A stretch of 63,629 nucleotides of DNA from Mizuhopecten yessoensis (GCF_002113885.1 NW_018404512.1:1000242-1063870); one strand, 5' to 3'; positions 19,787-32,323 are shown, numbered from the stretch's first letter. The notes: generated by a model from the letters alone, not told the origin. Numbers and translations are program-made.

Positions 19787-19923
19787 CTAAAAGTTTACAC
19801 ATTCAAGGTGTGACGAAACGAAAAAGGGACAACAGGCAGTCCGGTATTCCTGAGCACGTACTCTGCACGTGTTGCTAATTTGGGTGAAGACCTGCAGTGG
19901 ATCAATGGTAGTTGGCCTTATAT
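19787..19923 (-). CDS. Exon 3 (terminal) of the predicted secreted Cys-rich protein (module 2)
   Basis: tttattgtattgtag|AT, phase 1: (N)IRPTTIDPLQVFTQISNTCRVRAQEYRTACCPFFVSSHLECVNF*. Cys spacing is identical to exon 2. Confidence 0.85.
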
Positions 19924-20310
19924 CTACAATACAATAAACAGCACATACATATATTACCTCCGACAAAGTGTACTATAATGCGTATATCAATTTAACAATT
20001 AGTAACTTTGCATTTTACATGTTATTACCGAACGAAAACAGCTCAACTTTCATGTGTTTTTTTAACGTAAAACTTTAGAGCAACTGCTCCAACCGGCCAG
20101 AAAAAAGGGAAACACGGGTGATCATGTTTTCATAATATTTCGAGCACTTTGAAATATAAATGTCGATCGGCTTAGTGAAAATGACAAGACCATACATTTT
20201 GTTATCAATTATTTGTTTTATACTTTTCTTACCTAACTTAACACATGCAGTTTCGTATCCGTTTTATTTCCTGTTCCACACACCCTTCAATTTCACTATA
20301 CTTTACGATA

Positions 20311-20397
20311 TCCATATCCTTCCCTGTATCAACGTTTGACCCGTGTCAGCGGTTTGGCTGATATGGGGTCTAGGGTTGGTACGGGGAAGGATATGGA
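20311..20397. repeat. Short inverted repeat (23-bp arms) in intron 2 of the Cys-rich gene
   Basis: tccatatccttccctgtatcaac ... gttggtacggggaaggatatgga. Confidence 0.7.
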
Positions 20398-21087
20398 AAC
20401 GGTCAAATTGTAACCTTTAAGTTTCCAAGCAAGCACGTATAACTGTAAATTATTTGATTTTCTCAAACTGTGCCTTCTTGATTGATTAACGAATATTTAT
20501 ATTCAAGGTTAACTTTTAATTGATTTAATTTCAATTTTTAATTAATTAATTTACAATTCAACAGACCCAAGGGTCCACTTACAGAATGGATAACAACATT
20601 ACAACAAAAGTATAAACTATCAGTCAGTTATGCATGTAACACAGACTAAAATATACTCATATGTAAAACAAAAGGAATTAGTGATAGCAAATAATCTTTA
20701 AAATTAAAATTACATTGAATCCTGTTTAAAATACTATACTTTCTTACGTTTATTTACTTCTCTGGCAGTAAAACTGGTTGAAACGAATTGATCATAGATT
20801 ACGACCAGAAACTAAAATAGTTTTTTATTTTTTTATTTTGAAGCTGATTATAATTGATGTATGGATCTAATACTCGTGAAAGCTCTTCATTCGCAAGTGA
20901 ATGTTCTCAAGAATAAAGTGATTTTACAAAATCACCCGTTTGCAATAATATGGTAATAAAACATACATTTTAGGTTACTTATAACTTATAGAATACTTTG
21001 CATACTGTATTTATATCACAACAAATTATATCGATAACAGTAACATGACTAACATGCTTTGCCAGATATTTTAAGATGTCCACTTAC

Positions 21088-21282
21088 TGTCGCTAAGCGA
21101 TAACACTGCACGGCATACGGTTTTAATATCTTCGCTCACACTGGATGGCTGGCCGGTACATTGCAGTTGGGGGTACTCGAACAAAGGACAACACTCGTTT
21201 AGGTACTGCAGGGAGCGACGTTCACAATCCTGGGGCAGTGCATTGAAGGGATCGCCCACTAGCATTCTCGAGGTCAGACTAT
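21088..21282 (-). CDS. Exon 2 of the predicted secreted Cys-rich protein (module 1: C-x10-CC-x9-C)
   Basis: ttaatttgcag|AT...GACA|gtaagt, 195 nt, phase 1-1, only one open frame: (D)SLTSRMLVGDPFNALPQDCERRSLQYLNECCPLFEYPQLQCTGQPSSVSEDIKTVCRAVLSLSD. Confidence 0.85.
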
Positions 21283-21599
21283 CTGCAAATTAATCAAAAC
21301 ATTCCTGTTATAGAGACGTCATACCAGTCCGGTAACGTCCGCGCTTGATCCCTGCTACGTAACATAATACTTTAAAATATACGGTTTTTCCTATCAAGTA
21401 TTGACATTTTGAGGTTGTATCTCGGGATTTCAAGTAAATAAGTCAGAATTGCAAGATAATATGAAATTATTAATTCAAAATGTCGAGTAAACAACACGAA
21501 GAAAATGAAATCTATCTATTTTTTACCTGGCCCTAATGCTCATAGGTAAGTATTTGTATATTTATATAAAAAAAGACTAACATTAATATCAGATACGCC

Positions 21600-29060: not shown

Positions 29061-32000
29061 AATAAGTAAAATTTCTGGAAAGATCCTTGTTCTACTTTAC
29101 CTTCTGTTCTATAAATGGTAATCTTCTACGGACATAGGAGTTTTCAGTTGAGTATGTTTGTTTGTTGTAAGATTTGTTCAATCTGTCTTGTTTTACAGTT
29201 TCCATATTGTACATTGAATTACATAAAGACTAGCTATCTGTTTGCGTTTAAAATTACAATGACTTAACAGTTTTGGCAACTGTGACCTGTGCATATATTA
29301 GCACATGGACTTGACGGCGTATACGGTAGAATGTATGGTGCGCGTTATAAGAATAATACAGTACTATTTCCAGTGAATGGCGACATTTTCAGTGAATCTA
29401 CATCGATACATGTATATTGAGAAATTTTGAAAATAGGCAGTGAACAACACTATTCTTTCAATCGCTCTTAACTTTTTAATGCAGTTATATAAGTAGCACT
29501 TCGAACATATTTGTTCAATAATAACGGCCATTATTTACACGTATTACCACAATGCTCTGGTAGTGACGCGGTCGAACGTCGCAAAAGGAAGCCGCCATTG
29601 CTTACTCTACCGTAAAAGAATTTTGAATATGCATCCATGAAATAAGAAGTATGCCAGCATCCTATTGTTATATAATCAGTCATAATGGATCCGGAATATG
29701 TTCCATGTTTCTATTTTTCTAGTTGGTGAAGGAACCAAACAATGGCTGTCATCGAACAGTTATCTCGCTGAAGCGCGAACGGCTCCATATTTGAAACAGG
29801 TATGAACCCGCCGAGCTTTTTTTCATTGCGAATACGCTACGTCAGAGTTTACTAAGCTGAAGAAGGGAACAATGTTAATATTCTTACACAATTTACATAA
29901 TATATAACTGATTGGGGTTATAGGTCCAGTATGTCGGCTTTTTTCATTATCCACAGGTAACGATCCACATCTTGAATTAAATATAATTTCTTTTACTTTT
30001 AAAAGACTTACGGGTTTTACGTAATAACTTACGACATGTTTATACTTATAGGTCCTGTGCGATCTTAATGTATCACTATTTACAATGGTACAGATAGAGT
30101 GTTCTAAAAACTAATTGCCAGGCACCATACAGATGATTCGTACTTCTAAGAATCACACATCGGTGACCTTATATTGTAGTTGGTCTAAACTACCTTTGGA
30201 TCAGAAGAGGGAGGGGAGCAATTGTCAGTTTTTGGAATGAAATGATATACTAATAATTATCTAATGGCCTTAATTTAGAATAGAAAGACGTCACAAATCA
30301 AGCACCATATGTACGATTTGAGACATATCAGAATCTGGCTGCGATACGCTGCTTCTGATATATCTGGAATGTTAATAGCTGAAACTGTTTTTTATTGAAA
30401 TGCCGGATCAAAACTTAACAAAACAAATCTGCAGATGTAAAAAAAGATAAATGTTTGATTTTGAAAAATAGTTGACAATTACTGAGAACGAATTTAAATC
30501 GATTTGCAGTTTTAATCGACGTCTGCTCCAATTAGTGAATTCAAAAAAGTATATTTTTGTGAAGAAGACCATAGGATCCAATTCAAACAGGAATATAAAA
30601 TCGGAAAAATATGACAAAAAATAATTCACCGGAAATAGATATGTTACTGTTTTCCTAGACATTTCTACATACTATGCTCGATTTAGAAAACTGATGGGCA
30701 TATTTTCTCAAAGTATGGCACATCATAGACATATAACATTTGAATGAAAATTATCATGATTGTTTTTCAACAATACAAAAAAAGTTACTAAAAATTAAAA
30801 GGTGTGGTCAACATTGACGGGGATTATCCTAACAAAAGGACGGATAAAGGTCAGAGGCAAACGGATTTTTTATACAAATTATGATAGTGTAAAATGTATA
30901 AAATTAATGTTAATTGGATACTAGATATGTCATAACGATATACATGAAGTAATCGGTAATTCTATCATGACAAACATACAAAAGTTTCAAAACAAATAAT
31001 ATATATTCAACAATGCCAACTTGCTTATACATAGGTTCAATAGTGGTCTTTATTATACTTGTTTAAAAACTGTCTACAGAATCATTTGTATGTAATACAA
31101 AAACCGATAAATTCCATTTTTGCAAGCAAAGCATGTCAAATGCACAATATTACATAATCAAGTAGAAGAGTTCATTGCTTATTGTGTTAAATACCGACAC
31201 TTTGTTCTGCTTTCGTATAAAACCAAAATATTTCAGTAAAGTATGCATGTTTTAAAGTTATGTGTAGCAGTTATAACTCATAAATATGTATTCTGAAAAA
31301 GTAATCGTTTCTCTGGAGAACTTCTTCAGGTTGAGATTGTATTAGAGACAAAGATATGCAGATATATATAAAAAAAAAACAATAGAATAAATAATCTTAA
31401 TAATAAAACTAAAATACACTTGATTTTTATTATATTGTTATATTTCTTGTCCATTCATAAACAAACATATGATGGAATATTACATTATTTTATATTTTTA
31501 ACCCCCCATACAATAATTATAAATTAGCACATTTGATTCTTGTGACCTTTAACGAAGAGGTTTTGTTATGAAGAAACACAATTAAAAGGAAAAGTGGAAA
31601 ACATATTTGTTTTTCCTGACTTATTATTTTTGAAATCTTTTTTTAGTAGCCAACATTTAAGTAAGTATGAAAAATAGACTAGCTTTTAACTACGTAAATC
31701 AGCTTGTCCAATATAGGAATTATCTTATTAGTGGTAACATTTCGCATACTTTTCTGCTAAAACCCTAAATAAAAAAAAAATCTTTCTTCAAATAGTGTAT
31801 TATATGGTATCAAATTATTAGTTGGAATATATTGCGAACGACAATGATATAATTTGATAGTAGTTTCGTCATTGGAATGCTTAAAAAAGGCGTGTATCAA
31901 CGCATCGTTAACAACCACACAAGTGTAAGTCAATATAGGTCAAAATGATGGGTAGCAAATGTCGTACCGCAAGCATAGCTACCTTTCCAGAGAACAAGAT

Positions 32001-32195
32001 GTTTGTGGTGTCTCATCGGTGTCTGTCGTTATATTTTCGTAATCACCGACTTTACATGCCCGTTGAACAAGTAAACGGTCTTTCGACAAGTTAACAGACA
32101 CGGCCTAATTTTTTCAACTCTGGATAACGAACACGTTCGAGTATGTTTAAACGGGATTAAACAGTTAATACGTATATTGTAAACATAACACTTAC

Positions 32196-32256
32196 CTTGA
32201 AATTGTAGAAATCCTACAATCATCAGCAGACACAAAGTTGATCTACATATACTCAT
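32196..32256 (-). CDS. Exon 1 of a predicted secreted Cys-rich protein (signal peptide MSICRSTLCLLMIVGFLQFQ)
   Basis: gtgaaaATG (A at -3), hydrophobic core, ends CAAG|gtaagt in phase 1, just downstream of a TATA/Inr. An in-frame upstream ATG lies at 32268. Confidence 0.7.
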
Positions 32257-32285
32257 TTTCACGTGCATCGAATAGTGAACAAACA

Positions 32286-32323
32286 GAACTGTCTGCAAAA
32301 CTCTCGTTAACATCGTATTTATA
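32286..32323 (-). promoter_or_regulatory. TATA box and initiator-like element of the Cys-rich gene
   Basis: TATAAATA at 32323-32316 and ACAGTT (Inr-like, A at 32290) about 33 nt downstream, 34 nt before the ATG. Confidence 0.5.

Follow-up and report, generated by a model that had tools for sequence, protein, structure and literature searches.

Small secreted proteins held together by disulfide bonds include hormones, pheromones, defence peptides and toxins, and in molluscs many such proteins are lineage-specific and have been missed by gene prediction. In insulins and relaxins the cysteines are spaced CC-x3-C-x8-C in the A chain and C-x11-C in the B chain. In the class II hydrophobin ATEG_04730 the spacing is CN10CCN11CN16CN8CCN10C, and in class II hydrophobins each cysteine doublet is followed by hydrophobic residues (PMC3020181). 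Here, we describe a locus of the scallop Mizuhopecten yessoensis (NW_018404512.1:1000242-1063870, a stretch of 63,629 nucleotides referred to below as the window, with positions counted from its first letter), in which three minus-strand exons specify a small protein with two copies of a four-cysteine module, C-x10-CC-x9-C. We lean towards the view that the gene is real and that its product is a secreted disulfide protein of two modules, from a family not yet described. The gene appears to be single-copy, very weakly expressed, protein-coding and so far unannotated.

Gene structure

Direct reading of the minus strand at 32256-32196, 21282-21088 and 19923-19787 gave an open frame over three exons that span 12.5 kb, at exactly the coordinates first proposed. 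The translated exon peptides were identical to those of the original prediction, and its claim of three phase-1 exons with GT-AG sites and a stop-free frame was borne out by the coordinates, the splice sites and the split codons alike. The coding part of exon 1 (32196-32256, minus strand) comprises 61 nucleotides (nt), or 20 codons plus 1 nt, and runs from an ATG start to the donor CAAG/GTAAGT (the slash marks the splice point). Exon 2 (21088-21282, minus strand; 195 nt, phase 1 to 1) lies between the acceptor TTAATTTGCAG/ and the donor GACA/GTAAGT and encodes module 1 and a linker with a ninth cysteine. Exon 3 (19787-19923, minus strand; 137 nt, phase 1) follows the acceptor TTGTATTGTAG/, encodes module 2 and ends with TAG (19789-19787). 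Both donors thus read GTAAGT, the acceptors are of the pyrimidine-rich AG type, every exon boundary is in phase 1 and the codons split by the introns are GAT (Asp) and AAT (Asn). The putative intron 1 (21283-32195, minus strand) measures 10.9 kb and has GT..AG ends, and intron 2 (19924-21087, minus strand) measures 1164 nt, its removal being shown by a contig of run X2 described below.

The open frames around exons 2 and 3 are 72 and 61 residues long, compared with 64 and 44 coding codons, and the frame of exon 2 meets a stop three codons upstream of the acceptor and another five codons after the donor. Since stops close the frames within a few codons of either exon, the boundaries of exons 2 and 3 have almost no freedom. 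The window contains no N.

Internal repeat

Exons 2 and 3 each encode one copy of a module of ∼30 residues. Module 1 (21158-21247, minus strand; residues 12-41 of the exon 2 peptide) and module 2 (19799-19888, minus strand; residues 12-41 of the exon 3 peptide) both have the spacing F-x6-C-x10-CC-x9-C, with cysteines at positions 19, 30, 31 and 41 of either peptide, and the fuller pattern common to both copies is F-x6-C-x2-R-x3-Y-x3-CCP-x-F-x4-L-x-C. The ninth cysteine, which makes the total odd, is residue 56 of the exon 2 peptide (codon 21113-21115, minus strand).

BLASTP aligned the two peptides without gaps and in the same register (residues 12-43 with residues 12-43, 10/32 identities, E = 7e-07), and the local alignment score of 62 was reached by none of 5000 shuffles, for which the mean was 22.6, the standard deviation 4.4 and the maximum 48. 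The DNA of the modules is 51% identical over 96 aligned nt, with identities of 59%, 56% and 38% at codon positions 1, 2 and 3, respectively, and the conserved Cys, Arg, Pro and Leu residues of the two modules are written with different synonymous codons. Randomization of the silent sites, together with retention of the protein pattern, points to an old duplication of a phase-1 exon that was retained at the protein level. The original prediction had described exons 2 and 3 as sharing a pattern of cysteines and other residues while diverging elsewhere, and had interpreted this as an old exon duplication under protein-level constraint; the description agrees with the BLASTP alignment and the shuffles, and the interpretation draws further support from the codon-position identities. 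Purifying selection is indicated by the repeat itself, independently of any orthologue. More generally, an internal repeat can take the place of cross-species conservation when an orphan gene is judged.

Exon 1 and the putative promoter region

Between positions 21283 and 45000 (24 kb), the minus strand holds 278 candidate phase-1 stretches that run from an ATG to a GT, and among these only the candidates ending at the donor at 32196 combine a 9/9 match to the donor consensus with a strongly hydrophobic core (mean Kyte-Doolittle value of 3.07 for the best ten residues). The next candidates, which end at a donor at 28150, are far weaker. In the exon 1 peptide, which is signal-peptide-like, a basic residue precedes a hydrophobic stretch of 11 residues, after which comes Q-F-Q. 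The genome contains a single copy of the region 32100-32500, which includes exon 1 and the putative promoter.

A putative promoter element, the TATAAATA box (TATA; 32316-32323, minus strand), was found by direct reading and by pattern ∼60-67 nt ahead of the proposed ATG start. An alternative in-frame ATG is present at 32268-32266. With transcription starting ∼30 nt past the TATA box, this ATG at 32268 may be the first in the message and would add four residues (MHVK) to the protein; the ATG at 32313 would fall upstream of that transcription start. The TATA box is followed, still ahead of the start codon, by TTTTGCAG (32293-32300, minus strand), which could be read as an initiator-like (Inr-like) start or, equally, as the splice acceptor of an unseen exon of the 5' untranslated region. 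The TATA and Inr-like elements of the original prediction have therefore fared differently: the TATAAATA box stands at 32323-32316, whereas the element nearer to the start codon has this second, equally good reading.

If exons 2 and 3 were real and exon 1 wrong, the transcript would start at some other upstream exon, or close upstream of exon 2 with translation from the in-frame Met6 of that exon's peptide, and the product would have a different N-terminus or no signal peptide at all. Such a model gains from the length of the proposed intron (10.9 kb), from the join of 32196 to 21282, which is read from sequence alone, and from the ambiguity that TTTTGCAG at 32300-32293 brings to the 5' region. 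It would have to dispense with the donor at 32196, which alone among the 278 candidates unites a hydrophobic core with the correct phase and a 9/9 donor consensus. The acceptor of exon 2 is strong and in phase 1 and so calls for a coding exon upstream. A protein with nine cysteines and conserved cysteine spacing is, moreover, generally expected to fold in the secretory pathway. We therefore regard a misplaced exon 1 as distinctly unlikely, and the exon 1 model set out above is, in our estimation, likely to be correct.

Transcript evidence

Among the public sequencing runs sampled for the locus, eight rows from four studies hold part of it. Six runs from two of the studies contain a fraction of 0.81-0.87 of the sampled words of the locus and resemble genomic DNA. 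Reads or contigs of four runs (X1, X2, X9 and X14) were placed on positions 19400-21500 of the window. Run X2 gave one contig of 178 nt at a depth of 2.4, which covers 21121-21088 and then 19923-19780 and so joins the last 34 nt of exon 2 to exon 3, extending 7 nt past the stop codon. The 1164 nt that it skips have the ends CT..AC on the plus strand, corresponding to GT..AG on the strand of the gene. With just one occurrence of each exon in the 988-Mb assembly, the contig does not derive from a retrocopy and consequently represents spliced RNA. The junction of exon 2 to exon 3 is confirmed; the contig contains precisely the join, 21088 to 19923, that the original prediction had named for a check against RNA. 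The contig differs from the window at one position (19869 G>A), where Thr18 of the exon 3 peptide, the neighbour of the module's first cysteine, becomes Met.

Run X1 behaves as DNA, in that pieces of intron are covered and both boundaries of exon 2 are crossed unspliced. Coverage in this run is low; its depth is zero in the bins spanning 19613-19896, and over 19613-19918 a contig that matches from 19919 upward continues with 255 unlike letters at the place of exon 3. The discontinuity may stem from a unitig break, from haplotype divergence or from a structural variant over exon 3.

Searches for paralogues and homologues

The queries were the peptides of exons 2 and 3 or profiles of the modules, taken exon by exon rather than as the joined 130-residue model. 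In the assembly of the scallop's own genome (987,588,634 bases in 82,659 contigs), searches by exon and by profile gave no paralogue below E = 0.2. The weak matches above this value were rejected as paralogues, being without the first cysteine, carrying stops or consisting of satellites. One of them, L009 (G000:C76636:95012-98071, local positions 1498-1734, minus strand), is a satellite whose translation repeats Y-T-T-Q-C-C-P-L and mimics the CCP part of the module, which explains its profile match at E = 2.35. No tandem paralogue was found, nor was any further copy of the module within intron 1; the gene is a singleton.

Neither exon peptide matched a Pfam family, the sub-threshold match to CCDC142 (E = 0.015, 14.6 bits compared with a cut-off of 25) being rejected. 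An exhaustive phmmer search of 1.84 billion representative proteins with the exon 2 peptide gave no credible homologue. Its two matches near E = 1e-6 were both rejected. The first (P0001) is a repetitive junk open reading frame. The second (P0002; E = 7e-6) is a protein of 2204 residues with repeated lysozyme-type units, for which the score sums five repeated weak stretches with a 14/43 match; the alignment misses the cysteine doublet and the fourth cysteine, module 2 has no match to this protein and the hit was judged to be due to chance. The gene's own product is likewise absent from the 1.84 billion representatives, a comparison made with no positive control from the annotated proteins of this genome. 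Its absence from the library supports calling the gene unannotated and lends weight to its earlier description as hidden.

A word-indexed profile search with both modules returned no candidate within its length limit of 37-117 residues, which leaves out full-length kin. A sequence-profile search of the PDB gave nothing credible (2k53_A, at E = 0.12, was rejected), and a feature search of the ESM Atlas with both exons gave nothing at or above 0.8. A search of the literature for the cysteine spacing turned up only plant lipid-transfer proteins and unrelated papers. Conotoxin framework XXIV, considered as a C-CC-C parallel, was dropped, as a review gives C-C-C-C-CC-CC for RsXXIVA. That the protein could be placed in no recognizable family was already part of the original prediction, and the searches of Pfam, the 1.84 billion representatives, the word index, the PDB sequences and the Atlas, along with the Foldseek and VIA-align comparisons described below, all speak for it.

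Predicted structure

Prediction by AF2 without an alignment reached a pLDDT of 80.6 in the best of its models of the exon 3 peptide, the other four ranging from 46 to 72; ESMFold2 was unsure of the same chain. In the AF2 model of module 2, which we treat as tentative, a predicted helix (residues 8-26) holds the first cysteine and is followed by a β-hairpin (30-35/38-43) that starts at the cysteine doublet and ends at the fourth cysteine. The stretch from the first cysteine to the doublet is predicted to be helical. A prediction of the exon 2 and exon 3 peptides as a two-chain complex scored 0.01, which is no answer and counts as evidence neither way.

A Foldseek search of the PDB with the model of module 2 gave nothing below E = 2.9, and its top rows, which are not significant, were the CS-αβ peptides ASABF and tamapin. 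For ASABF (PDB code 2d56) and the single-sequence model of module 2, Foldseek reported E = 2.9, a probability of 0.11 and a TM of 0.40, and VIA-align a Z of 2.3 with a root-mean-square deviation of 3.7 over 39 residues. The best Z from VIA-align over 48,161 chains was 3.3, which is within the noise, and a shape search of the Atlas with the same model gave nothing above noise. Hydrophobins were absent from both the Foldseek and the VIA-align lists.

These structural rows bear on a rival explanation in which the same gene and product serve host defence, the protein being an antimicrobial or toxin-like effector. The product is small, probably secreted and rich in disulfides, as are many small cysteine-rich proteins of molluscs, and the module 2 model, a predicted helix packed on a β-hairpin, is the one for which ASABF (E = 2.9, Z = 2.3) and tamapin head the non-significant rows. 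A defence peptide is, however, hard to reconcile with the charge of the product, which is mildly acidic rather than cationic (∼12 acidic and nine basic residues after exon 1). Nor does such a role sit well with a singleton that has no tandem paralogues and is nearly absent from bulk RNA-seq, or with the absence of the C-x3-C and C-x-C signature of CS-αβ peptides. We consider a defence function improbable.

Proposed product and function

If the locus is, as we favour, the gene of a secreted two-module disulfide protein, exon 1, 10.9 kb upstream, would supply a signal peptide, and a precursor of 130-134 residues would enter the secretory pathway and be cleaved to ∼110 residues. Each module, in which a helix probably precedes a short hairpin, would be oxidized and locked by two disulfides, and the ninth cysteine would be free or would form a dimer.

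Several observations weigh against this reading. The RNA support amounts to one 178-nt contig of depth 2.4 from a single run, the RNA label of which is guessed, and two raw RNA-seq runs of ∼1.9 billion letters each (X9 and X14) had zero reads on exon 2 or exon 3, their reads in the region being placed only on a repeat in intron 2. The junction of exon 1 to exon 2, the cleavage and the secretion are predictions from the logic of the sequence alone, and the Q-F-Q that precedes the exon 1 boundary fits the -3/-1 rule poorly, leaving the cleavage site uncertain. No canonical AATAAA occurs within 1.2 kb of the stop codon, the only variants there being ATTAAA at 459 and 519 nt. No orthologue was found, and the case for constraint consequently rests on the repeat within the gene and not on a comparison across species. 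Finally, the AF2 model of the exon 2 peptide alone, with a pLDDT of 47, is unusable.

The zero exon reads in X9 and X14 indicate that expression is rare or restricted. Expression this low, with no homologue or paralogue found and with a non-synonymous Thr-to-Met variant beside a module cysteine, is also what might be seen if the transcript were spliced yet without function, or the gene were dying, with an open frame that is a relic or due to chance. This explanation has to contend with a frame that is intact across three exons and with the eight module cysteines and the F, R, Y, P, F and L residues, which have been kept in register between the two copies despite randomized third codon positions. 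Such retention calls for long purifying selection after the duplication, and a functionless locus seems to us highly improbable.

Returning to a functional secreted product, our best guess, which we hold at somewhat less than even confidence, is an extracellular binding or signalling factor of narrow expression (by tissue or by stage), resembling a hormone, a pheromone or a gamete-recognition protein. A ligand or recognition factor is favoured over an antimicrobial peptide, a toxin or a matrix protein because the gene has no paralogue, encodes a mildly acidic product and is nearly absent from bulk RNA-seq. The interchain bond that the original prediction suggested for the ninth cysteine, and the roles that it listed (defence, toxin-like, pheromone or shell/mucus protein), are conjectural. 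A bolder proposal, which we consider unlikely, is that C-x10-CC-x9-C defines a new disulfide domain family restricted to scallops or bivalves and that a dimer formed through the ninth cysteine is a secreted hormone, pheromone or gamete-recognition ligand; the small size of the gene, its 10.9-kb first intron and its narrow expression would explain how annotation missed it. A rarer form of this proposal would have an animal protein that converged on, or descended from, the eight-cysteine architecture of the hydrophobins. Should orthologues and a site of expression be found, the locus would provide a new cysteine module and, for a species used in aquaculture, a molecule with a candidate role in signalling or recognition.

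Other features of the window

Intron 2 contains an interspersed repeat of ∼300 bp (20536-20819) with at least 74 matches in the genome at 77-95% identity, resembling a short interspersed nuclear element (SINE) or a miniature inverted-repeat transposable element (MITE). Most other copies align as two pieces with ∼60-70 extra bases between them, and these bases are absent here near 20701-20704. RNA reads and contigs cover this repeat at high depth, with loose ends exactly at 20701 and 20704. Intron 1 contains a tandem array (23211-23579) in which a 33-bp unit is repeated 11.2 times with 90% matches and no insertions or deletions; overlapping open reading frames on the minus strand at 23174-23598 are accounted for by this array. 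No Pfam match was found for open reading frames of at least 90 residues within intron 1 or for those near exon 1.

Downstream of the gene, 17968-19029 holds a satellite-like array with a higher-order unit of 302 bp in 3.1 copies and sub-repeats of ∼41 bp, and the sole AATAAA motifs downstream of the stop codon (18580 and 18290) fall within it. An open reading frame of 194 residues at 16143-16727 (minus strand), with a sub-threshold match to ANATO (E = 0.0013), was rejected as a gene; it is the translation of a short tandem repeat with a cysteine-containing unit of ∼13 residues. Two retrotransposon fragments lie on the plus strand, one at 8112-9047 with an endonuclease-type open reading frame (Exo_endo_phos_2, E = 5.8e-06, which narrowly misses the cut-off) and one at 44274-44744 with part of a reverse transcriptase (RVT_1, E = 2.2e-07).

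Comparison with known systems

The product resembles insulin and relaxin precursors in being small, in its predicted secretion and in possessing a cysteine doublet. It differs from them in that the A-chain and B-chain spacings are both absent and there is no match to the Pfam family (PF00049); direct reading of the two modules agrees with the original remark that their spacing is not that of an insulin A chain. A C-peptide flanked by dibasic sites is absent, the sole RR lying inside module 1. With the C-terminal segment of C-type lysozymes, as represented by P0002, module 1 can be aligned along G-D-x-F-N-A ... C-x10-C with 14/43 identities. In contrast to C-type lysozymes and α-lactalbumin (PF00062), the domain of which has ∼120 residues, only a stretch of 43 residues aligns, module 2 fails to do so and there is no Pfam match.

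Like the CS-αβ peptides ASABF and tamapin, module 2 is modelled as a two-stranded hairpin preceded by a helix, and cysteines occur in the helix and in both strands. Unlike CS-αβ defensins and toxins, both modules lack the C-x3-C of the helix and the C-x-C of the strand, and the protein is acidic, not cationic. An arrangement in which one secreted polypeptide carries two diverged copies of a small disulfide module is found in the avian double β-defensin AvBD11 (PMC9138766). Its cysteine array is unrelated to that of the scallop protein and the sequences are not similar; the analogy is one of architecture only.

The fungal class II hydrophobins (PF06766) are likewise small secreted proteins (secretion being a prediction for the scallop product) of ∼100 residues, with eight cysteines that occur, as do those of the two modules, in the order C-CC-C-C-CC-C. 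Hydrophobic residues follow the doublets in both, being P-L-F and P-F-F here. The half-spacings are N10/N9 in both modules, compared with N10/N11 and N8/N10 in the hydrophobin ATEG_04730 (PMC3020181). In the scallop protein the central gap is 42 residues (14 + Cys + 27) and includes the ninth cysteine, instead of the 16 of the hydrophobin, and the class II spacing does not hold; its halves, unlike those of hydrophobins, clearly repeat one another in sequence and are encoded by separate phase-1 exons, and the host is an animal. Neither exon matched the hydrophobin profiles PF06766 (class II) and PF01185 (class I) up to E = 10, and neither was among the weak matches of these profiles across the genome. 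Membership of the hydrophobins was rejected on these profile tests, and the likeness is one of pattern only.

The same pattern of cysteine order, half-spacings and hydrophobic residues after the doublets would also suit a hydrophobin-like surface-active or matrix protein, in which the eight cysteines form, as in fungal class II hydrophobins, one compact cross-linked unit at mucus, byssus or shell interfaces. We find this very hard to credit, given the unmatched profiles, the structure lists free of hydrophobins and a central gap that measures 42 residues in place of 16 and takes in an additional cysteine. Further points against it are the predicted helical character of the stretch from the first cysteine to the doublet, an expression level that is very low for a material protein and the occurrence of hydrophobins, to our knowledge, only in fungi. 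On the reading that we prefer, that of a secreted disulfide protein with two modules and no described family, the module would be new but the kind of gene a familiar one, namely that of a lineage-restricted small secreted cysteine-rich protein.

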